Sequence record: NC_010811.2
Length of the DNA: 64,000 nucleotides
Direction: 5' to 3' (one strand)
Below the pieces are notes generated by a model. It searched no databases. It saw nothing but the letters and a program-made list of their open reading frames with translations, and was not told the origin of the DNA. Shown here piece after piece: positions 1-42,380 of the stretch (position 1 is the first letter of the stretch; the number at the start of each line of letters is the position of its first letter). The translations under genes were made by a program, and so were the position numbers.

Positions 1-495
1 GATGCGATTCCACTTGATGGTCTTAACCGCCTTCTTGTCCATACCGAAGACGAAGCCCAGATGGAAATTCTCCTTGATACCGCCTTTGGGTGCGAACGCC
101 TTGGTGCCGAAACCAACGCAGCGATAGTCACAGCACAGCTTGGGCAGCGTCTTGGTCCAGAAGCGGTAGGTGGCGTCGCGTGCGGTGCTGGCCACGACAT
201 GCTTCTGCTGTTCTGGGTCGAACGCATACAGATACAGGTCGTCGTCCATCATGAAGGTGAAGCGATGCGGCGACTGCAGCATGATCCACTCGCGCTTGGC
301 GCCCAACGTCTTGATGTTGTTGGGCTGTGCCAGCACGTTGACTCGCGGATAGTTCTTGCGCAGGGCTTTCACCTCGTCCGCGGGACACACTAGGGTCACG
401 TGCTGATGCATGCCCTTTGGCAACCGCTCCACCGTCAACTGATTGTCGACCCGGCCGCGTGTTGGTATGTACAGATGATAGTCGATCTTAGACAT
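1..495 (-). CDS. TAGT-like (TET-associated) GT-A glycosyltransferase, runs off window edge
   Basis: Manual translation from ATG 495: MSKIDYHLYIPTRGRVDNQLTVERLP...GAKREWIM...FMMDDDLY. Has an IPTxGR start and a DDD motif, is paralogous to 2647-3546 and overlaps the stop of the upstream gene. Absent from the ORF track because it lacks a stop in the window. Confidence 0.75.
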   Translation of the reverse strand, partial: MSKIDYHLYIPTRGRVDNQLTVERLPKGMHQHVTLVCPADEVKALRKNYPRVNVLAQPNNIKTLGAKREWIMLQSPHRFTFMMDDDLYLYAFDPEQQKHVVASTARDATYRFWTKTLPKLCCDYRCVGFGTKAFAPKGGIKENFHLGFVFGMDKKAVKTIKWNRI

Positions 496-1210
496 GATCG
501 GTCTTCAGATAGGCTTCCAGTTCTTCGGGAGTGCCAAGGCAATGGAACGAGTCACGCGGCACCGGCACATTCAGCACAAGATTGTTGGTCACAATCAAGT
601 GGTTGAGCAAGTCGCTCATGTAGATTTCTTTGGCGATCGACTTGCGAAGCAGATGGCTTGCGGCCTCTGCCGCCGCGTATCCAGAAGAGAACCAGTAGAC
701 GCCGCATCCGCTGTACGTGGGAGTCGGTGCCGTGATGGTCCGTTCGTGGATATGCGTGACGAAGTAGCCATCGGTGTGCACTGCGCTGAAGTGGCGTGCA
801 GGCTCTTCGTTCAGGAACGTGAGCATTGCGGCGGTGGCCTTGGATTCAGCCGCAGGACGCAGGTACGCCAGAAGATCGATCTTGGCAAACGAATCACAGT
901 CCAAGAACAGGACGGGCGCTGCCAGATCAATAGTCGGCATCTTCACCAGAGCGTGCAACGCCGAATGCGCAGGGCCGCGCAGCGTTTGGCACGTGCTGAG
1001 GAAGCGCAGGCCGGAAGTTCCACGCGGCAGATGACGAACAGCTTCACCGCTGAAGATGAAGTTCACGTCCTCGGTCTTCAGTCCGTATTCGGCCAGCACA
1101 TGCTCGTACATTGGGACGCCGTGTACCGGGATCATTGGCTTGGCTTGACGGTAGCCAGCAGCCGTGAAGCGGGAACCAAGTCCCGCAGCCAACATGATGA
1201 TTTGGGTCAT
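488..1210 (-). CDS. Sugar nucleotidyltransferase (NTP_transferase family)
   Basis: MTQIIMLAAGLGSRF...KPMIPVHG...FLDCD. The start was moved to ATG 1210, directly after the stop of the upstream gene. Confidence 0.85.
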   Translation of the reverse strand: MTQIIMLAAGLGSRFTAAGYRQAKPMIPVHGVPMYEHVLAEYGLKTEDVNFIFSGEAVRHLPRGTSGLRFLSTCQTLRGPAHSALHALVKMPTIDLAAPVLFLDCDSFAKIDLLAYLRPAAESKATAAMLTFLNEEPARHFSAVHTDGYFVTHIHERTITAPTPTYSGCGVYWFSSGYAAAEAASHLLRKSIAKEIYMSDLLNHLIVTNNLVLNVPVPRDSFHCLGTPEELEAYLKTDHV

Positions 1211-1212
1211 TT

Positions 1213-2646
1213 CTATTGGATCTGGTTCAGAACTTTGCGGGCCAGTTCGACGAATCGCAACTGGCGCTGTTTGTCGTCGCTGTGGAGCGGAAGCATGCTG
1301 ATGAACAACAGTCCCGTCACCGCCCACAACTCGTTGGACGAAATGCCGAAGCGCTGAGCGCCGTAACGCAAGATGGGGTCTGCCAAACCCTCCCATTCAG
1401 TGGGCAGTGGCTGCTTTGCGACTGCGTGGTCGTAGCCGATCACGGAGTGCAGAAGCTTTGCCAGCTCATAGCGAACGTCGCCATACAGCGAGGGGCGGTC
1501 CTTAGCGTCCAGCCCCCGTGGATCGAACACCAAGACACGATCCGTACGCTGGTCCAACATGATGTTGGAGAAGCACAGGTCACCATGCATGATGGTTCGA
1601 TGGTGTACCTTTGGATTCACGTTCATCGCGAACAACTGAGCCATGCCATGAAGGTCGGCCAACGGCAGATGTACGTTGCCCTCCTCTAACAGATCCAGGC
1701 GGCCCCACGTCTTCGTGACCGCAAGCTGATAGAAGTCGTTGACATGCGCCCCCTGACACGCTTGATGCGCGTCTTCCACCCAGCACAGCGTCTGATGAAG
1801 AACGTGGGTCCACGCACGGTCGTCCAACTTGCCATACACATAGAGCTCAGCCAGCGTTGGCAGCGGCAGATACTCCATGGTGTACTCGCCGTCGTCATAG
1901 TGGACGATGCGCGGCACGTAGGTGGACAGCTTGCGTGGCAAACCCAGGAACCACTCGCGCTCTGCGTTCACCTTCTTCGTGTTGGCGCTGCGCTTGGTCA
2001 GCAGGTGGCCATCGTTGGTCAACCCGTTGAAGTGACGAGTGGTGCGGGACAGGAACTCGCGCTTGGAACTGAAGTACGTAGACAGATGCCCAAAGTCCAG
2101 CCAGTGCTCGTCGATCGAAACGTTGGGAAGGCATCCCGCCATGTGACGCACAGCCGATTTCACCGTCTCGTAACTGTCGAGCGTGAACGTCAGCTCACTC
2201 AGGCGACACGCAAAGTACCCGGCGAACACGCTGTCCTTGTCCAGGAACTGCCAGTGGGCAGACGTACCCAAGGGATGAGAAACTACGCCCACCGACGGTT
2301 CTTTCAACCACTTGGTGACCAGCGTATCGCCCCACAGAACATGCACACAGACGTCCGGCGCGTTCTCTTGAGCACCGATCAGGCGCAGCGCGCGACGCAA
2401 CTGATAGGGCAGCGACTGATCTTCCGCCGACGGGAAGAAGTAGACGTTGCCTCCCACGTATGGAACAGACGACATCTCGGGCCACGTCACGTAGATGTGG
2501 TGGAAGTTGTCGCCTGCTGCGTCCAACTGCAGGTCGAGCAGCGTGCGCCCGCCCACCGGCACACGGGCTGCAGGAATGGCCCCGAACAGGAACTGAAGCT
2601 CCTGATTGCATGGAGCCGATGACATGATGAGCAGGACGTTGCGCAT
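1213..2646 (-). CDS. Nucleotidyltransferase-like N-terminus fused to an APH/choline-kinase-like phosphotransferase
   Basis: N-terminal LWGDTL and WLDFGH motifs; C-terminal HGDLCFSNIM and FDPRG kinase motifs. Confidence 0.75.
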   Translation of the reverse strand: MRNVLLIMSSAPCNQELQFLFGAIPAARVPVGGRTLLDLQLDAAGDNFHHIYVTWPEMSSVPYVGGNVYFFPSAEDQSLPYQLRRALRLIGAQENAPDVCVHVLWGDTLVTKWLKEPSVGVVSHPLGTSAHWQFLDKDSVFAGYFACRLSELTFTLDSYETVKSAVRHMAGCLPNVSIDEHWLDFGHLSTYFSSKREFLSRTTRHFNGLTNDGHLLTKRSANTKKVNAEREWFLGLPRKLSTYVPRIVHYDDGEYTMEYLPLPTLAELYVYGKLDDRAWTHVLHQTLCWVEDAHQACQGAHVNDFYQLAVTKTWGRLDLLEEGNVHLPLADLHGMAQLFAMNVNPKVHHRTIMHGDLCFSNIMLDQRTDRVLVFDPRGLDAKDRPSLYGDVRYELAKLLHSVIGYDHAVAKQPLPTEWEGLADPILRYGAQRFGISSNELWAVTGLLFISMLPLHSDDKQRQLRFVELARKVLNQIQ

Positions 2647-3546
2647 TTACTTTGCCTTCTTCTGTTTCTGACTACTGGCGAATGCCTTCTCCCAGTAGAC
2701 GATCACTTCCTTGCGGTTGATGGACCCCTTGTACTCCTTGTCCACCACCTTGACGAACGGGTCGTGGATGGACGCCAGCTTGACCGCGGCACGGTCTGAT
2801 CCCTTTACCGTACGCTCTTCGCTACAGCCGCCGTCCGAGCCGTAGTCGAGTGGATTCACAACGAAGTTGGTGAGGATCAGATTGGGGTAGCCCAGTCGCA
2901 GCAGGTGCAGCGTCACGTTGAAGTCCTCGCGGAATTTCACTTCGTCGAATCGGATGCCGTGCTTGAGCAGTGTGCGCCGATTGTGGCCGATTGCGTGCAT
3001 GGCGCGTCCCACCATCTTGAAGTCGCCGCGCACATAGTTGTTCATCAGGCGGCTGGCGATGCACGTGTGGACTACGCCCTTGTTCACCATCTGATCCTTG
3101 ATGAAGTCCCAGCGACGCATCTTCTGCACGTCAGGGAACGGCTCCTTGAACAGGAAGGTGATGCCCTTGGCCTTTGCCGCGTCCGTCTGCACCCACTTGC
3201 CGCTCTTGGCACCCTGCCATTCGCGGTGCTCTTTGTTGCAGCGGCGGAAGAAGTACATGTCGTCGTCCAACTGGAAGACGTTGTCGGCGCGAACGTTCTC
3301 GATGATCCACTGGCGCTTCTTTGCGATACAGTCGACCGTGGGATCGTCCACCGCCCACACCAGCTCGTGCTTGTGCTTCTTGCGCAGGGCCTTCGCTTCA
3401 TCCCAATCGCTGGCCAGCAACAGCGTTCGCTCGCGCAGTTCGGCAGGCAGCTCACGCAGCGTAACCTGACGATCGACGCGCCGATGCGTTGGGATAACCA
3501 CTTGGAAGTCTTTGTCCGCCACCGGCGGGCGTCGATGTTGTGCCAT
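2647..3546 (-). CDS. TAGT-like GT-A glycosyltransferase
   Basis: VVIPTHRR...KKRQWII...FQLDDDMYF...REDFNVTLHLLRLGYPN...GGCSEERT; start at ATG 3546. Confidence 0.8.
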   Translation of the reverse strand: MAQHRRPPVADKDFQVVIPTHRRVDRQVTLRELPAELRERTLLLASDWDEAKALRKKHKHELVWAVDDPTVDCIAKKRQWIIENVRADNVFQLDDDMYFFRRCNKEHREWQGAKSGKWVQTDAAKAKGITFLFKEPFPDVQKMRRWDFIKDQMVNKGVVHTCIASRLMNNYVRGDFKMVGRAMHAIGHNRRTLLKHGIRFDEVKFREDFNVTLHLLRLGYPNLILTNFVVNPLDYGSDGGCSEERTVKGSDRAAVKLASIHDPFVKVVDKEYKGSINRKEVIVYWEKAFASSQKQKKAK

Positions 3547-3547
3547 G

Positions 3548-4243
3548 TCAGTAGGTGAGTGTGAAGATGGAACGACCGTCGGCATCGGTAGTGAACGCCG
3601 AGTAGCCACGGACCAAAACGTTAAACTTGGTCACGTTATGCTCGATGGTGGTGCCCGGCGTCATGTGCCCGCGCAGATCGAAGTGATCGACCAGCACTTC
3701 GTTCATGGTGCCAGCTTCGATGATACGCCACATATTGGTCAGGCCATCGCTGTGCGTGTTGTAGCGGATGTAGTACGACTGATGGCCAGCCGTCACCTGA
3801 TTGACGATGTCCTGCGCCACACGCTCGAAGTCTTCGGGCGTTTGCAGATATTCGTCCACCGAGTACTGGAAGGCACCAACACCCGGCTTCTGGTAGAGCT
3901 TGTTGGTGTCCGCGAATCGGCCTTCCTGGATGGTGTTCATCCACACACTGAACACGTCGCTCACTTCCTTGAACTGGGTGAAGAATGCGCCGCGTGTTGT
4001 GCGCGTCGGACACACGAAGTCCACGATCACCCACGAGCCCTGCTCCATGACACAGCGTGCCAGTCGGCCCAGCGTCTTGGCCTGGATCACACGATCCTTC
4101 TCTTCGAACGACAAATGCGTCGTGATGTTGGCGCGCGCCCAGTCCGCGTTGAAGTGAATGGCGCTCAGACGCTTCTGAATGGCGAGGGCCAGCGTGGTCT
4201 TGCCACTGCCGGGCAAGCCTTGAATCATGATGGTCTTGGACAT
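3548..4243 (-). CDS. Adenylylsulfate-kinase-like P-loop kinase with C-terminal extension
   Basis: GLPGSGKTT Walker A, NADWAR, and VIVDFVCPT motifs of the CysC-like family. Confidence 0.75.
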   Translation of the reverse strand: MSKTIMIQGLPGSGKTTLALAIQKRLSAIHFNADWARANITTHLSFEEKDRVIQAKTLGRLARCVMEQGSWVIVDFVCPTRTTRGAFFTQFKEVSDVFSVWMNTIQEGRFADTNKLYQKPGVGAFQYSVDEYLQTPEDFERVAQDIVNQVTAGHQSYYIRYNTHSDGLTNMWRIIEAGTMNEVLVDHFDLRGHMTPGTTIEHNVTKFNVLVRGYSAFTTDADGRSIFTLTY

Positions 4244-5130: not shown

Positions 5131-5535
5131 CTATCTCTTCCTTCCGCTCATTTTGTGCCGTGCGCGCTGTTGCTGCTCGAAGCGCTTCCGGTCCTGCTGC
5201 TGTTGCCACTTGGTGTGGCGTCGTTCGTCCTCGTCCGACATGTCAGAAGCAGGGGGCTGACAGGGTTCAGCGTGGTCGATGAATCCAAAGCCACCGCCTG
5301 CAGTCAGCGTTGGGTCAATACGGAATATGTTGGAATGCTCCTCAGACACTGGAGTGCTGGTGGTCAACACCACTTCCCCAGTACGCGCAAAGATGCGACG
5401 GGCCTCGTCATCACTGATGTCAGGAATCATAACCAACTCCGTCTGATTGTCTTGCAGCGCTTCCTTGATCTGCTCGGTGATGTGCGCTGACAGGTCACCA
5501 AGCACTAGCACACGGCGGGGACGGTCTTCGCTCAT
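5131..5535 (-). CDS. Hypothetical protein
   Basis: ORF tightly packed in the operon. Confidence 0.7.
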   Translation of the reverse strand: MSEDRPRRVLVLGDLSAHITEQIKEALQDNQTELVMIPDISDDEARRIFARTGEVVLTTSTPVSEEHSNIFRIDPTLTAGGGFGFIDHAEPCQPPASDMSDEDERRHTKWQQQQDRKRFEQQQRARHKMSGRKR

Positions 5536-5537
5536 AA

Positions 5538-5954
5538 TCAGCCTCTTCCGGAGATGCTCAACAGTGCACCATTGCCGTTCAGTAGGTCTTGAACTTCGGC
5601 GATTTGTGCTTGAGTAAAGGTGTCCGGGACATAGGCCGTAACTTCAATCTCGGTGTTGCCCCACTGGATCACGTTGTTCTTGTCCACGCCCACTGTCACT
5701 CGACCGGGTCTCCAGTCAGTCTTTAGCGCGCCCTCGGTCACTCGAATGTACGTAGGCTTGAGGGTAGACACTACGGCCAGCGCCGTTTCATCCCACTTGC
5801 GACCGAGCAGCGACTTGGGGAAGGGAACGCACATGCGGACTTCCTTTAACGGAGCAGTCTTGTACGCATGTGACAGGGCGATGATGTCGCTGGTCAACGG
5901 ATCTTCCGCTATCGGCTCAAACCACACGCCTGAAGTGCTTCGATAGTCACGCAT
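5538..5954 (-). CDS. Putative serine-protease-inhibitor-like protein (I78/potato inhibitor I fold)
   Basis: IRVTEGALKTDWRPGRVTVGVDKNNVI resembles the T-x-D-x-R-P-x-R-V reactive-loop pattern. Confidence 0.5.
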   Translation of the reverse strand: MRDYRSTSGVWFEPIAEDPLTSDIIALSHAYKTAPLKEVRMCVPFPKSLLGRKWDETALAVVSTLKPTYIRVTEGALKTDWRPGRVTVGVDKNNVIQWGNTEIEVTAYVPDTFTQAQIAEVQDLLNGNGALLSISGRG

Positions 5955-5955
5955 G

Positions 5956-6348
5956 TTATGCTCCTGAATGCTCCGTGTAGTAGTCGATGGTTGTCAGCCA
6001 CACGTTATCACCCTTGTTTTCAGTCGGAAGCAGATTGTAAAGGGTGTAAGAACGACCTTCAAAGTCAAGCGTCACCTCCGGCCAACGCATTCGACGGCGA
6101 TCGTGCAAGTACCAATCGAACTCTACGGCGAGCTCCGTTTCGTAGTCGATAAGCACCTGAGGGATTTGGACGCGACCAGCGAACGCCATGCCGTACACCT
6201 CAGGTCTCTCTTCTTCACGGACACGGAACAAAGGACCAATGCCGAGCAGGCCAAGCGGATTGAAGCGAACGGCTACCGACTTCTCTGCCGGGCGATGCCC
6301 AACCCTCTCTAGGGGCTGCTTGACGCTAGGTGCACTAAGGAGTTTCAT
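5956..6348 (-). CDS. Hypothetical protein
   Basis: ORF packing; ATGA-type overlap. Confidence 0.65.
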   Translation of the reverse strand: MKLLSAPSVKQPLERVGHRPAEKSVAVRFNPLGLLGIGPLFRVREEERPEVYGMAFAGRVQIPQVLIDYETELAVEFDWYLHDRRRMRWPEVTLDFEGRSYTLYNLLPTENKGDNVWLTTIDYYTEHSGA

Positions 6349-18919: not shown

Positions 18920-19038
18920 TGGAGTCGCGCCCCGAATCGAACGGGATGGGATGTAGCTGAATTCAACCAGACCAACGTGCGGCCGCACGCCTACACCTCT
19001 TATGTATTCATACCAGCAGCCTACTGGACTCACGCGAC
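18920..19038 (-). ncRNA. 119-nt tRNA-like RNA with expanded D region and branched insert replacing the anticodon loop
   Basis: GTCGCGT/GCGCGAC acceptor stem, CCCG-TTCGATT-CGGG T arm, encoded T-CCA; starts 7 nt after the tRNA-Gly CCA. Confidence 0.7.
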
Positions 19039-19045
19039 AAAGACT

Positions 19046-19121
19046 TGGAGCGGGCGACGAGACTCGAACTCGCGACATCTTGCTTGGAAGGCAAGAACTC
19101 TACCAACTGAGCTACGCCCGC
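19046..19121 (-). tRNA. trnG: tRNA-Gly(TCC)
   Basis: GCGGGCGTAGCTCAGTTGGTAGAGTTCTTGCCTTCCAAGCAAGATGTCGCGAGTTCGAGTCTCGTCGCCCGCTCCA; canonical 76-nt cloverleaf with CCA. Confidence 0.95.
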
Positions 19122-19134
19122 AGAAACTGAAACA

Positions 19135-19204
19135 ACTCCCTTAGTGGGTTCGAACCACTGCCTGCCCCCGTCGGGACCGCTCTACCACTCTAAGCTAAAG
19201 GGAA
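19135..19204 (-). ncRNA. tRNA-like RNA with 4-nt anticodon loop (pseudo-tRNA)
   Basis: TTCCCTT/AAGGGAG acceptor, GCTT/GAGC D arm, GTCCC-GACG-GGGGC arm, AGTGG-TTCGAAC-CCACT T arm; no CCA. Confidence 0.7.
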
Positions 19205-19273
19205 TTGAGTTTGCTCACCAGCATGGAGAAGGTGCGCACAGTGCACCCCCTTGGTCCATACACGGCTTGCAGA

Positions 19274-21543: not shown

Positions 21544-21669
21544 TGGGCGACCGGAAGGAATCGAACCTCCGTCTGCAGGTACCAATCTCAGCATTCGATC
21601 CGGCCTGTTAAGGTTCCCGCGTGTCTAGCGCCGAGATGCACTGCAATTCTGCCACTGAACTACGATCGC
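21544..21669 (-). ncRNA. 126-nt tRNA-like RNA with a 62-nt structured segment in place of the anticodon loop
   Basis: GCGATCG/CGGTCGC acceptor, GTTC-AGTGGCA-GAAT D arm, TGCAG/CTGCA stem, GGAGG-TTCGATT-CCTTC T arm. Confidence 0.8.
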
Positions 21670-21706: not shown

Positions 21707-21952
21707 CTAGAAAGTTGTTACTTCGTACTTGCGTCCGTGAAACTGGGCGATCCAAATCTCCTGGTCCTGATGCGTGCAGAAGATCTGGTCACCAAGATCT
21801 TCGCGACGCACGAATATTGTGCATTTGATCTTGGCAAACTTCTCGTCAGCATGAAGCACTTGGTAGGTATTCCACTGGCCTTTGAGCTCGACCAAAGAGC
21901 CTTTCGTTAGCAGTTGCATGTCGAAGAACGGTTGAAAGTCCAGGGATTTCAT
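21707..21952 (-). CDS. Hypothetical protein inserted in the RNA-gene cluster
   Basis: 81-aa ORF with GGAG SD. Confidence 0.6.
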   Translation of the reverse strand: MKSLDFQPFFDMQLLTKGSLVELKGQWNTYQVLHADEKFAKIKCTIFVRREDLGDQIFCTHQDQEIWIAQFHGRKYEVTTF

Positions 21953-22000
21953 CGTAGCTGATCTCCTCCCTGGACTTCGGGCACTAACCCCAATCTAACT

Positions 22001-22178
22001 GTTCGTTACATCCACCCTAGTTACGATAATGAGAAAACCCGACCCTCTACCGCTGAGGTACCGCCGTCCTTAATCAACTCGTGAGAATTGACTAAGGCAC
22101 GGCGGACGGGATTCGAACCCGCGTCTTTCAGGCTTAACCATGGCTTCTTAGAGTAATCGCCATGGCAGGGTGCCGAAC
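22001..22178 (-). ncRNA. Circularly permuted tRNA-like RNA (YrlA/Y-RNA-like), copy B
   Basis: 5' to 3' order: CCTGA, AAGAC, T arm GCGGG-TTCGAAT-CCCGT, CCGCCGT, hairpin linker, ACGGCGG, D arm CCTC-AGCGGTA-GAGG, TCGGG. The ends pair (CACCCTG/TAGGGTG, GTTCG/CGAAC). Confidence 0.75.
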
Positions 22179-22210
22179 TACTGAACTTAGATTGCTTACA
22201 GGTCACACGT

Positions 22211-22385
22211 TAGAGGTAATACGCGAACGATAATCGAACTCGACGCCTGATTAGGGCGTTGCGTCTACCAGTTTCGCCACTCCTACATCAAACACGCTGC
22301 AAGCAACACGCTTGATGCAGGAGGTTGGATTCGAACCAACAGTGAGTTCCGTATAACGCTAACGACTACGCTAACGCTTCCTCTA
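22211..22385 (-). ncRNA. Circularly permuted tRNA-like RNA (YrlA/Y-RNA-like), copy A
   Basis: T arm GTTGG-TTCGAAT-CCAAC and CTCCTGC precede GTAGGAG and a Leu-type D arm (GGCGAAACTGGTAGACGC). The ends pair (TAGAGG/CCTCTA, TAGTCG/CGATTA, GAACTC/GAGTTC). Confidence 0.7.
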
Positions 22386-22390
22386 TGCTT

Positions 22391-22397
22391 TATTTAC
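22391..22397 (-). promoter_or_regulatory. GTAAATA phage promoter motif driving the RNA cluster
   Basis: CAGCAGTAAATA 6 nt upstream of the predicted 5' end of RNA A; preceded by the GGGACTACC/GGTAGTCCC hairpin (22402-22429). Confidence 0.65.
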
Positions 22398-22436
22398 TGC
22401 TGGGACTACCGCCGAGTGTTGGTAGTCCCGAAATCC

Positions 22437-23234
22437 TTACACCTGATTGCTGGCCGGCGACGTGCGCAGCGGTCCCAGGATCAGGTCGGCGAGACGCTGG
22501 CCGATGTTGTCAACCGTTTCCACCTGCACGCTGTTGGCGCGAGTACGAGCGGCCTTGGTCTCGACGATCAGTTCATCGATGATGGCCAGCGCCTGCGCCT
22601 TCTGCAGTGCAGTAGTGGCGCCACTCACCGTGTTGATGGTGAAGGTGCCGACCACCTTGTCGGTCGTCACTTCCTTGACTTGTGCCGGATGCTTGTCGGT
22701 TGCTTCGTACAGCACGACCGGGGTCATCACCTTCTCGGTCTTCGTGGCGACTTGCGGCTGCGTGGCGCGCCACGTGCCGGGTTGCGCAGCGCTTGCGTCC
22801 GGCGCCCAGCCCTTCGACGCGTCGAGCGTCGGAATCTGGGTGAACAGCTTGCGGAGTTCGTTGAGGCGGACTTCCAGCCCCATGAGCTCGTCCACCGGCA
22901 CGTTGGTGGCAATTGCCTGACCGTTGTACATCAGATCGGCGACAGCCTTGGTGTTGGTCACGTTCTTCGTGAAGAGCGTCTGCTCGGCCTTGGCCCAATA
23001 GGTGAGATAGTAGTCGAGCGTGGCGAGCACCGTCGTCGGCAGTTCCTTGTCCTGACGCGCCGCCGCTTCGATCTTGGCATTCGACGGATCGTCGGTCAGC
23101 AGTTCGAGGGTCTTCGTGAAGCCGGTGAAATACTGATCGCCCTTGGCGAACTTGTTCTGCGTGTCAGCGGTCAGCTGATCACGTGCGTTGATCACAGTCT
23201 TTTCAGCTGCGAGAATTTCGTGGAGTTGTGCCAT
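22437..23234 (-). CDS. Conserved-looking helical hypothetical protein
   Basis: MAQLHEILAAEK...; strong phage-like codon usage; own GTAAATA motif at 23284-23290. Confidence 0.8.
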   Translation of the reverse strand: MAQLHEILAAEKTVINARDQLTADTQNKFAKGDQYFTGFTKTLELLTDDPSNAKIEAAARQDKELPTTVLATLDYYLTYWAKAEQTLFTKNVTNTKAVADLMYNGQAIATNVPVDELMGLEVRLNELRKLFTQIPTLDASKGWAPDASAAQPGTWRATQPQVATKTEKVMTPVVLYEATDKHPAQVKEVTTDKVVGTFTINTVSGATTALQKAQALAIIDELIVETKAARTRANSVQVETVDNIGQRLADLILGPLRTSPASNQV

Positions 23235-40581: not shown

Positions 40582-40899
40582 ATGTCCCTACACCAATCGC
40601 ACCCGCACCTGAACTACGCTCTTGAGGTGTACATCTCAAAGCATCAGTACATCGCATCGCCTCTGCAAGTCGTGAGCTACCTCACTGCGCCGACTTTCAA
40701 GGCGGATCTCGACGAAATGGGCGTAGATCCGGCACAAGCCGGTGCGCAAGCCGACACGTGGCTCAGTGCACCACTGAACATGGCCCTCTTCCTGAAAGAA
40801 GTGATCGAGGAAAACGAGCCGTCGGTACTCGGCGCTGAACATCACACTGGAGCCGAGGCGCTGGCCGCTCTGCTCTGGGTCGCAGACAATCTCGCGTAA
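40582..40899 (+). CDS. Early hypothetical protein
   Basis: First gene after the early promoter. Confidence 0.75.
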   Translation: MSLHQSHPHLNYALEVYISKHQYIASPLQVVSYLTAPTFKADLDEMGVDPAQAGAQADTWLSAPLNMALFLKEVIEENEPSVLGAEHHTGAEALAALLWVADNLA

Positions 40900-40909
40900 G
40901 GGGTTCAAC

Positions 40910-41608
40910 ATGTCCAACGTCTACACCGCAGACTTCGGCGCAACCAAGTTCCAGACCACGCGTCGTGGGGTCAACGCCACGTCGCCCATCCTCAAGAATG
41001 GCGTCAAGGTCGCCACGCTCCACGATGTGGCCGAGCGCATCTCCACCGACGTGGTGTTCGTCAACACCCAGGAGCGCTTTGCCTTCTTGGAGGCCGCTCA
41101 GTCGCACGGGTTCACGGGGTCCGAGCACTTCGCCATCTCCGAGTTCGCTCGCCATCTGCTGGATAAGGCGTCCAACGCTTTCCTGGAGGCTGTCGAGCCA
41201 TCCAAGCCCAAGCGCAAGGCCAAGCCGTTGCCCGCTCCTACGCCCGAGCCACAACGCACAGTTCCAGAAGCGGGCGCGGACTTCATCCGCGAAGCGTTCG
41301 GCATCGAAACGCAGTTCGAGCGGCAAGCGTACCAACCCAAGCGCAAGCGCCTGCTCTTCTCGTCGTCGGGCAAGGTTCCATCGTTTCCTGAGTTGGAACG
41401 CATCTGTCGCCAGTTCACTGCGCAGCGCTGCCAAAACGTCAACACGTCGGTCTTCATCAGCGAAACGCCAGTGTTCCACTCCAGTACGTGGAGCATTCGC
41501 GAGCTGACTGTATCGTTCGATGGGCACCGAGTAGTGTTCACCAAGTACCACAACGCTACTGACCTGCACATCGAGCTCATCGATCGCAGCGCTGTCTACG
41601 AGGAGTAA
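40910..41608 (+). CDS. Early hypothetical protein
   Basis: ORF packing. Confidence 0.75.
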   Translation: MSNVYTADFGATKFQTTRRGVNATSPILKNGVKVATLHDVAERISTDVVFVNTQERFAFLEAAQSHGFTGSEHFAISEFARHLLDKASNAFLEAVEPSKPKRKAKPLPAPTPEPQRTVPEAGADFIREAFGIETQFERQAYQPKRKRLLFSSSGKVPSFPELERICRQFTAQRCQNVNTSVFISETPVFHSSTWSIRELTVSFDGHRVVFTKYHNATDLHIELIDRSAVYEE

Positions 41609-41611
41609 ATC

Positions 41612-42040
41612 ATGGAAAAGTTCTTCGCAGAGACAGTCGTTACCCATGAAGGATTCGGGCGTGGGGTTGTTCTCGCAGAGACGGCGCCCGACGTGTACGA
41701 GGTGCGATTCGATCGGGTCATCGACCCTTTCGTCACCGATTACGAATGCTCTCGTACTCATACGGTGAGCGCCGAGCATCTAGAGCGTGTGGTCCTCACG
41801 TTGGCCGACTTTAAGCCCGGCGACAAGCTGGAATTCACCCAGCGCTTCCGTGTCGGCGACAAGACCGTGACCGAGGTGCGGACCGCTGTTGTCACCCTCA
41901 TCAACTGGGAAGGTAACGGCCTCGTGTCGTACACAGGTCGCGTTCAAGAAGGCATGATGCGGACGGGCTCCGGCGCGTTCGACCCGGCAGCGGTGGGCAC
42001 CAAGCCGTTCGGTTTCCACTGCGCAGTGCGTAAGGTCTAA
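41612..42040 (+). CDS. Hypothetical protein (SH3-like segments)
   Basis: VTHEGFGRGVV; FKPGDKLEF. Confidence 0.7.
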   Translation: MEKFFAETVVTHEGFGRGVVLAETAPDVYEVRFDRVIDPFVTDYECSRTHTVSAEHLERVVLTLADFKPGDKLEFTQRFRVGDKTVTEVRTAVVTLINWEGNGLVSYTGRVQEGMMRTGSGAFDPAAVGTKPFGFHCAVRKV

Positions 42041-42050
42041 GGAGTGGGTC

Positions 42051-42380
42051 ATGAAGTTCGTCAACAGCAAGAAGGTCAAGGACCATGCGTACGACCTGTA
42101 TCTGGTCCGTCAGCAGAAGCGTGAGCTCGCTGAGAAGATGCGCGAGTTGGAAGCGCAAGAGCAGGCGTTGTCCGCGTTTCTGCGCGCAAAGCGCGCCGAC
42201 GAGGACTTCCAGTTTGCAGATCCCGAAGGCTATCTGATGGAAACGGATTTCGTGCCGGGGTCGCGTATGGATGTGAACGACGCGCAGGTCCGCCGAGACT
42301 ACGCCAAGATGGGTAAGAAGGTGCCCATGAAGAAGAGCGAGTGGGTCACGGTCAAAGTCCGCTACATCCTGGAGAAGTAA
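42051..42380 (+). CDS. Hypothetical coiled-coil protein
   Basis: AAGGAG SD. Confidence 0.75.
   Translation: MKFVNSKKVKDHAYDLYLVRQQKRELAEKMRELEAQEQALSAFLRAKRADEDFQFADPEGYLMETDFVPGSRMDVNDAQVRRDYAKMGKKVPMKKSEWVTVKVRYILEK

Follow-up and report, generated by a model that had tools for sequence, protein, structure and literature searches.

The final 64 kb of the genome of the Ralstonia jumbo phage phiRSL1 (NC_010811.2, 231,255 bp) carry two tandem elements, termed A and B, each of about 200 nt and both encoded on the minus strand. This stretch of 64,000 nucleotides is called the window, and a window position equals the record position minus 167,255. The elements occupy an unannotated 484-nt gap between two open reading frames (ORFs), ORF270 and ORF269. 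Our analysis indicates that A and B are probably non-coding, circularly permuted tRNA mimics that form a conserved phage module with ORF270, which encodes a protein of the DUF7873 family. We hold the structural and genomic claims about this module with high confidence. A role as a ribonucleoprotein in counter-defence may be considered, but only tentatively. Neither element is a decoding tRNA or a Y RNA that depends on Ro60.

In each RNA the acceptor helix, T arm and D arm of a tRNA are retained, and a dispensable linker joins the two acceptor strands. The RNA's own ends build a long rod that replaces the anticodon arm in B and the variable arm in A. A first-pass annotation of this stretch had proposed that the T arm and 3' acceptor strand come ahead of the 5' acceptor strand and D arm, as in the Y RNAs termed YrlA. 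Sequence and computed folds both bear out this permuted order, and every pairing that had been quoted for A and B is present on the minus strand. The minimum free energy is -76.7 kcal/mol for A (z = -4.2) and -83.6 kcal/mol for B (z = -5.6); none of 200 shuffled sequences folds as well, and the minimum-energy folds give exactly the described arms. The acceptor strands of A pair poorly with those of B (4-5 of 7 positions), also as proposed. What the first-pass annotation missed is the partner gene ORF270, the wide distribution of the module and the point at which element A is opened.

Element B, read from 5' to 3', consists of a 5' rod with a side hairpin, AAGCCUGA, AAGAC, the T arm, CCGCCGU, a 31-nt linker, ACGGCGG, a class I D arm, UCGGGUUU and the 3' rod. 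Its acceptor strands, CCGCCGT and ACGGCGG in the DNA, pair at 7 of 7 positions, and CCUUAGUCAA pairs with UUGAUUAAGG in the linker. The closing stem forms between AAGCCUGA and UCGGGUUU. The break point is the anticodon loop, and the terminal stem continues the equivalent of the anticodon stem.

Element A runs in the order 5' rod strand, T arm, 3' acceptor, 30-nt linker, 5' acceptor, D arm, hairpin and 3' rod strand, and starts 49 nt past the stop codon of ORF270. CTCCTGC and GTAGGAG pair at 7 of 7 positions, and the linker, which opens with discriminator A followed by UCA, extends this helix to 20 continuous pairs. That the linker lengthens the acceptor helix was correctly seen for both elements. 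The terminal stem, by contrast, had been described in both as a continuation of the anticodon-stem equivalent, which fits B and fails for A. In A this stem departs from the position of the variable arm and a complete anticodon-like hairpin is kept. On the predicted fold, element A corresponds to a class II tRNA with its opening in the variable arm. The D arm is of the tRNA-Leu type, with the consensus UGGCGGAACUGGUAGACGC across type A homologues. We rejected A as a decoding tRNA with anticodon AAU on the basis of C37 and because the hairpin at the anticodon position is not conserved as an anticodon in homologues.

A scanner that requires a T arm, a 7/7 acceptor complement and a D arm matches only A and B on both strands of the whole 231-kb phage genome. 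From 34 elements we derived a covariance model, termed R1, and applied it to the complete phiRSL1 genome and 38 loci. B scores 61.5 bits and A 57.9 bits, values that are partly set by construction because both elements sit in the seed; members outside the seed score 33-59 bits. The next best match in the window, at 22.7 bits, is an ordinary tRNA. We define the group by an R1 score of at least 40 bits and a location on the same strand downstream of a DUF7873 gene, and both A and B belong to it. At gathering thresholds Rfam detects nothing at the site, and neither ARAGORN nor Rfam calls a collinear cloverleaf tRNA at 21991-22388. At a relaxed Rfam threshold, the YrlA model matches B with 32 bits (E = 3.5e-4) and a model of the permuted beta-proteobacterial transfer-messenger RNA (beta-tmRNA) matches A and B in part. 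Rfam 15 contains no family for these RNAs.

The association with DUF7873 extends far beyond phiRSL1. By tblastn, ORF270 homologues are found in 75 GenBank phage records, among jumbo phages of Klebsiella and Serratia, phages of Vibrio, Rhizobium, Gordonia, Arthrobacter and Rhodococcus, and cyanophages. The family counts 291 clusters at 90% identity and 2,638 at 50% identity. Its members are about 245-280 aa long, and the domain stands alone, with no fusions among the top 150 representatives. IMG/VR yielded 33 loci, of which 27 are non-duplicate besides phiRSL1, and from GenBank we examined the phages Klebsiella FBKp24, Gordonia Keelan, Vibrio D474, Arthrobacter Racecar, Pseudanabaena PA-SR01 and Rhizobium Y65.

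At least one clear permuted element accompanies the DUF7873 gene in 33 of the 34 distinct loci that have downstream DNA; the 34th is the truncated locus L048. The module-bearing phages infect Proteobacteria, Actinobacteria and cyanobacteria. Elements lie on the same strand as the gene, mostly 40-150 nt after its stop codon, and at up to ~1.3 kb where a long linker or an insertion is present. Frequently they form a tandem pair, in which a Leu-like type A comes first and a class I type B second. Clustering of ORFs shows that DUF7873 is the only protein common to the loci, many of which sit inside phage tRNA clusters. The number of RNAs per locus (one or two) tracks the DUF7873 tree, with 4 changes compared with 9.8 in shuffles and none of 500 shuffles as low; the protein and the RNAs have therefore long been inherited together.

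A blind test used contigs fetched through distant DUF7873 representatives. One of them (L047) carries two R1 matches of 53.7 and 49.2 bits, which start 40 and 187 nt past the stop codon. Another (L048) ends inside a partial R1 match of 20.6 bits, and the third (L046) has no downstream DNA. The strict scanner missed three loci, in which elements are present with long linkers. Across the phiRSL1 genome and the 38 loci, all R1 matches of at least 40 bits are downstream of a DUF7873 gene except three. One of these (L012, 3846-3923, 46 bits) consists of two adjacent normal tRNAs and was dismissed. The other two (L012, 2186-2358, and its near-duplicate L014, 2077-2209) represent a genuine third permuted copy, with scores of 39-43 bits and an 88-nt hairpin as linker.

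Covariation supports the predicted helices. Among 34 elements, all 12 T-stem and acceptor pairs vary on both sides. The covariation score is 1.09 compared with 0.24 for shuffles, and slid registers pair at only 39-52%. The percentage of paired positions in these elements is partly circular, because they were first chosen by a scanner that demands pairing. An R1-fitted alignment of 54 distinct sequences takes in members that the scanner had not picked and still reaches 99-100% pairing. The location of the elements and the model matches are free of this circularity. Compensatory changes span phages whose partner proteins share 28% identity. In the closest relative, locus L008, the T arm is identical to that of B and the acceptor reads CUCACCU/AGGUGAG, so that 5 of the 7 pairs are changed and all of them are compensated.

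The terminal rod is likewise constrained. Cognate 5' and 3' flanks pair at a mean of -26.1 kcal/mol, compared with -18.4 kcal/mol for non-cognate flanks (p = 2e-11). Thus, the terminal rod is real. The duplex begins right at the junction, or just past the extra hairpin in type A, and rods are about 25 bp long.

The least constrained part of the RNA is the linker, which ranges from 5 to ~500 nt. It measures ~160 nt in L025 and ~150 nt in the type A elements of L008, L009 and L010. The type B linker of L010 (~5470-6000) contains an ORF resembling an HNH endonuclease; a mobile element seems to have landed in this acceptor loop without destroying the RNA. In 24 of 52 elements the 3' acceptor strand runs directly into N-CCA, whereas ~0.8 are expected by chance. 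Of 19 type A elements, 16 have A as the discriminator, and A at this position (A73) is an identity base of tRNA-Leu. From the frequency of N-CCA, and from a layout like that of two-piece tmRNA and YrlA, we infer that many members may be opened into two-piece tRNA-like RNAs. Whether this excision takes place in most members is, in our estimate, an even call. YrlA of M. smegmatis is cleaved by RNase P and receives CCA (PMC4201824).

These observations suggest a mechanism in which the RNAs would be transcribed with or just after ORF270, from the same strand. Each would fold as the top half and elbow of a tRNA set on a rod, and host tRNA enzymes would act on it. For many members this would mean excision of the linker by RNase P and 3' trimming, so that a tRNA-like RNA of two pieces remains, joined through the rod and ending in a natural N-CCA. 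A processed type A RNA would resemble the top half of tRNA-Leu with its A73 discriminator. DUF7873 would bind the rod, possibly at a UUAUCG motif, and the complex would act in a tRNA-centred host take-over or counter-defence by presenting or titrating factors that recognize the acceptor/elbow half and not the anticodon. Action through the acceptor/elbow half is favored because the anticodon is dispensable. It is conceivable, though we would not expect it, that DUF7873 and the permuted mimics constitute a new class of viral ribonucleoprotein, in which a fold not seen before binds a two-piece, open-CCA tRNA-like RNA as an independent functional analogue of Ro60-Y RNA or SmpB-tmRNA. If they were such a ribonucleoprotein class, type A RNAs could be charged by leucyl-tRNA synthetase, an enzyme that does not read the anticodon, and targets such as CCA-modifying toxins, RNase P, EF-Tu and aminoacyl-transferases would be intercepted or exploited.

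Several points, in addition to the partial circularity of the pair counts, weigh against the proposed module and its processing. The phiRSL1 linkers lack CCA (A-UCA in A, G-CCU in B) and form long perfect helices that are expected to be poor substrates for RNase P, which suggests that the phiRSL1 RNAs may stay closed or need CCA repair. The first-pass annotation had envisaged precursors that RNase P and 3' trimming convert into two-piece molecules; the N-CCA ends and variable linkers of homologues lend this proposal real support, which is weaker for phiRSL1 itself. In the cyanophage clade the acceptor loops are only 5-9 nt long and lack CCA. Linker excision may therefore not be universal. In L012 and L014 the third copy stands apart from the DUF7873 gene, 1.7 kb upstream and surrounded by ordinary tRNA genes.

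The invariant motif of the DUF7873 protein, DKHPAQVK within a near-invariant TDKHPAQVKE, lies at the tip of a long beta-hairpin in a confident predicted model (predicted local distance difference test score 89, predicted template modeling score 0.60). Compared by Foldseek with PDB and BFVD, this model has no match at E <= 1e-3, and we do not trust the weak top matches (ring-forming collar, TraT, MS-ring and small-terminase proteins, and PUR repeats). The DUF7873 profile matches nothing among PDB sequences, PHROGs, NCBIfam or PADLOC. Because there is no informative fold or sequence match, we infer the role of DUF7873 as an RNA-binding partner purely from adjacency and co-inheritance. A candidate site for such binding is UUAUCG. 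Among the 5-mers in the flanks of 44 elements, TATCG shows the strongest enrichment (30 seen, 6.1 expected), a modest one of ~5-fold, and the flanks of neighboring elements overlap. UAUCG is present in both phiRSL1 elements as UUAUCGU, and L008 carries the same UUAUCGUAACUAG at the position of the motif in B. Our full-text searches turned up no account of DUF7873, and none of RNAs of this kind except in connection with Ro60.

An improbable alternative is that A and B are genuine Y RNAs of the YrlA type that hijack a host Ro60 (Rsr), with DUF7873 as an unrelated neighbor. B has the YrlA topology and its sub-threshold score of 32 bits is close to the 33-35 bits of homologues; A gives no YrlA score. 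The gathering score is 69, however, and the match of B comes from the tRNA-like part only, with its stem pairs flagged as mismatched. The sequence GNCGAAN0-1G near the 5' end of YrlA is the presumed contact with Rsr, and it has no match on the minus strand of 21990-22400. A further mark of YrlA is a Ro60/TROVE gene encoded on its strand at a distance of up to ~4 kb (PMC4201824). As had been noted before, the window holds no such gene, nor is there one within ~4 kb of the elements, where the neighbors (ORF262-276) are all smaller than 270 aa. A wider search of the genome had been suggested for TROVE and for the RNA ligase RtcB, whose gene shares an operon with Rsr and YrlA in Salmonella (PMC7790460). 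It recovered a full-length RtcB in phiRSL1 (ORF082, Pfam 420 bits, record 40868-42121), ~148 kb from the elements and outside the window, a point in favor of the Y RNA reading. No TROVE domain appears in Pfam scans of 20 large unannotated phiRSL1 ORFs, a scan that left the virion-module ORFs outside. DUF7873, in contrast, is the single constant partner across phyla. We therefore rejected the assignment of A and B to YrlA, which the first-pass annotation had entertained, on half the gathering score, the missing GNCGAAN0-1G and the lack of a TROVE match in the 20 ORFs scanned and among the small neighbors.

The arrangement of the 3' half first, with an intervening sequence at the acceptor, is also that of true circularly permuted tRNA genes in algae and archaea (PMC3978253). 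If A and B were such genes, their ends would be cut and then ligated, the phage RtcB being one enzyme that could do this, and loss of the linker would give ordinary decoding tRNAs. The presence of RtcB, the U33 in the anticodon-like hairpin of A and a well-formed UUUCUAA loop in the type A element of L010 fit this idea, which we nonetheless regard as very unlikely. B and most homologues have no anticodon loop, and the CUAAUCA loop of A, with its C37, is replaced in homologues by GNRA tetraloops or 9-nt loops, or is absent. The predicted terminal stems of A and B contain asymmetric internal loops and a side hairpin, and no bulge-helix-bulge of the form 3-nt bulge/4 bp/3-nt bulge. No RtcB gene is located within 4 kb in the 34 loci, and RtcB was rejected as a linked partner for this reason. 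The RNAs might instead be cis-acting, tRNA-like punctuation or stability signals that recruit RNase P to the ORF270 transcript and have no role as free RNAs. They always follow the gene closely on its strand, a hairpin comes straight after the stop codon (and at the equivalent position in several homologous loci), and scans of the phiRSL1 segment from ORF270 to the RNAs found neither a minus-strand terminator nor a sigma-70 promoter consensus. The hairpin is followed by no U-run. For such a purpose an ordinary tRNA would suffice, yet the permuted topology, the two types, the ~25-bp rods and N-CCA are conserved. Moreover, the further copy in L012 is away from the gene, and the authors of the phage FBKp24 sequence annotate a promoter between the gene and the RNAs. 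We give this explanation a low probability. The chance that the elements are decayed, functionless remnants of tandem tRNA genes is negligible, even though tandem duplication can yield permuted arrangements and the region is part of a tRNA cluster with a pseudo-tRNA. Full compensatory covariation among phages with partner proteins at 28% identity, and the conservation of terminal stems and genomic position, contradict this reading. The related scenario in which each half belongs to a separate decayed tRNA without a terminal stem, raised by the first-pass annotation, is contradicted by homologues, in which a conserved terminal stem is seen.

The features of the site are collected in Table 1. 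The gap is part of a long run of minus-strand genes that also holds genes for tRNA-Gly and tRNA-Pro and a pseudo-tRNA.

Table 1. Features of the phiRSL1 module and its surroundings, in window positions
Feature	Position	Strand	Description
ORF270	22437..23234	-	265-aa DUF7873 protein; GenBank coding sequence; Pfam PF25283, 232 bits; conserved partner gene immediately upstream of the RNAs
Hairpin GGGACUACC...GGUAGUCCC	22402..22429	-	8 nt past the ORF270 stop codon; constrained folds
Element A, whole folded RNA	22194..22388	-	Class II (tRNA-Leu-like) permuted tRNA mimic; long interrupted terminal stem closes the RNA
A, T arm GUUGG-UUCGAAU-CCAAC	22324..22340	-	
A, closed acceptor hairpin	22280..22323	-	3' strand CUCCUGC 22317-22323; linker 22287-22316; 5' strand GUAGGAG 22280-22286
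A, D arm GCGAAACUGGUAGACGC	22261..22277	-	tRNA-Leu type
A, anticodon-position hairpin ACGCC-CUAAUCA-GGCGU	22243..22259	-	U33 present, but C37
A, UUAUCGU motif	22227..22233	-	3' strand of terminal stem region
Element B, whole folded RNA	21991..22194	-	Class I permuted tRNA mimic, YrlA topology
B, side hairpin GCCAUGG...GCCAUGG	22138..22166	-	On 5' strand of terminal stem; equivalent in L008, L013 and L040
B, closing stem, 5' strand AAGCCUGA	22128..22135	-	
B, variable loop AAGAC	22123..22127	-	5 nt
B, T arm GCGGG-UUCGAAU-CCCGU	22106..22122	-	
B, closed acceptor hairpin	22061..22105	-	3' strand CCGCCGU 22099-22105; linker from G-CCU 22068-22098; 5' strand ACGGCGG 22061-22067
B, D arm CCUC-AGCGGUA-GAGG	22044..22058	-	
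B, G26	22043	-	
B, closing stem, 3' strand UCGGGUUU	22035..22042	-	
B, UUAUCGU motif	22023..22029	-	Unpaired stretch 3' of closing stem
ORF269	21707..21952		Other border of the gap
Element C	21546..21669	-	Normal-order tRNA-like gene; 62-nt extended arm replaces the anticodon loop; Rfam tRNA 41.3 bits; absent from GenBank annotation

Element C shares with A and B the design of a top half plus rod, except that its acceptor end is open. The last 7 nt of its extended arm, UUGGUAC, could mimic the loop of a Thr(GGU) tRNA. Its fold is no better than those of shuffled sequences (z = +0.4). Element C has no counterpart in the relatives L008, L010, L013 and L015, and we rejected it as a conserved third member of the module on this basis. 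It is possibly related to A and B but outside the conserved module. The Gordonia phage Keelan (L041) carries a similar unannotated, normal-order tRNA-like element with an odd anticodon arm at ~3541-3616, between the DUF7873 gene and the permuted elements and just before a tRNA-Thr gene.

Elsewhere in the window, ARAGORN reports a tRNA-like sequence with a 2-base anticodon on the minus strand at 19134-19205, between tRNA-Pro and tRNA-Gly. ORF261 (18957-19130, plus strand) overlaps tRNA-Gly, and its annotation is probably spurious. The start of the window (1-4243) falls inside a cluster of glucosyltransferase-like, nucleotidyltransferase and adenosine 5'-phosphosulfate (APS) kinase genes. This cluster is adjoined by ORF231 (record 164264-165310), a homologue of 5-hydroxymethyldeoxyuridine DNA kinase (136 bits), and together these genes suggest a pathway of thymidine hypermodification. 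Outside the window, phiRSL1 also encodes a macro-domain protein (ORF054) and an HD phosphohydrolase (ORF045), which, like the RtcB encoded by ORF082, may have functions in tRNA repair. We read the presence of RtcB as an investment of the phage in tRNA repair.

In other phages, GenBank annotations overlap the elements. These include a tRNA-Sup-TTA in Klebsiella FBKp24 (L040, 5018-5097) and small hypothetical coding sequences in Keelan (gp126; L041, 3768-4013) and Vibrio D474 (L042, 3431-3526), all of which look like mis-calls. ARAGORN calls of tRNA-Asp(atc) in L008 and L009 and of tRNA-Stop(tta) in FBKp24 were set aside as artifacts that combine an upstream hairpin with the T arm of the element. 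Some DUF7873 contigs carry a phage tmRNA gene within 3 kb (L034, 7505-7839; L039, 7184-7510; L021, 6505-6895). The tmRNA has the permuted, two-piece form in the cyanophage-like contigs and the standard form in L021.

Our findings give DUF7873 a concrete, testable context. Many phage genomes gain one or two unannotated RNA genes, some of which are now mis-called as suppressor tRNAs or covered by spurious small ORFs. The module also opens the question of how phages use anticodon-less tRNA top halves in tRNA-centred defense and counter-defense.

Several known RNAs resemble A and B to different degrees. The tRNA cluster of phage T4 produces two stable, small, non-decoding RNAs, called species 1 and 2, which are processed with the tRNAs and have no assigned function. 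To our knowledge, these RNAs are neither permuted nor linked to DUF7873.

The closest architecture is that of YrlA (RF02553; Chen et al. 2014, PMC4201824), in which a terminal stem, variable region, T arm, closed acceptor stem-loop, D arm and terminal stem follow in this order. A permuted tRNA-like domain within a stem formed by the RNA's own ends is found in both A and B, with the stem of A at the variable-arm position. YrlA also has tRNA-like T and D loops, is subject to RNase P cleavage and CCA addition in M. smegmatis, and is present in phages (mycobacteriophages). The RNAs described here, however, have DUF7873 as their partner gene, usually come as two of different types, in many cases encode N-CCA, and reach only half the gathering score with the YrlA model. 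Type A is class II (tRNA-Leu-like) and often broken in the variable arm.

Two-piece tmRNAs (RF01850 and relatives) of α- and β-proteobacteria and cyanobacteria share with these RNAs the succession of T arm, 3' acceptor, (N)CCA, intervening segment and 5' acceptor, and a long helix in place of the anticodon arm. In two-piece tmRNA an encoded CCA is followed by an intervening segment that is excised; N-CCA is encoded by 24 of 52 homologues, and phiRSL1 has A-UCA and G-CCU. A and B differ in having a canonical D arm and in lacking a tag reading frame, pseudoknots and G3:U70. The beta_tmRNA model matches positions 86-151 only, and ARAGORN finds no tmRNA in the window. Without an ARAGORN tmRNA call or a tag frame, we rejected a tmRNA identity for both elements.

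Permuted tRNA genes of Cyanidioschyzon merolae, green algae and Thermofilum (PMC3978253) also begin with the 3' half, and an intervening sequence connects it to the 5' half through their acceptor ends. RNase P and a 3' nuclease are presumed to take out this linker, and the genes yield decoding tRNAs through a circular intermediate that depends on a bulge-helix-bulge (PMC3978253). In contrast, the RNAs described here occur in phages of bacteria, have no conserved anticodon or bulge-helix-bulge, and possess long terminal rods and a dedicated protein neighbor. Until now, permuted tRNA mimics were associated with three settings: Ro60 (Y RNAs), trans-translation (two-piece tmRNA), and the tRNA genes of algae and archaea. 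The new aspect of the phage module is that this RNA design is joined to a different, uncharacterized partner protein and is widely distributed in phages of at least three bacterial phyla.

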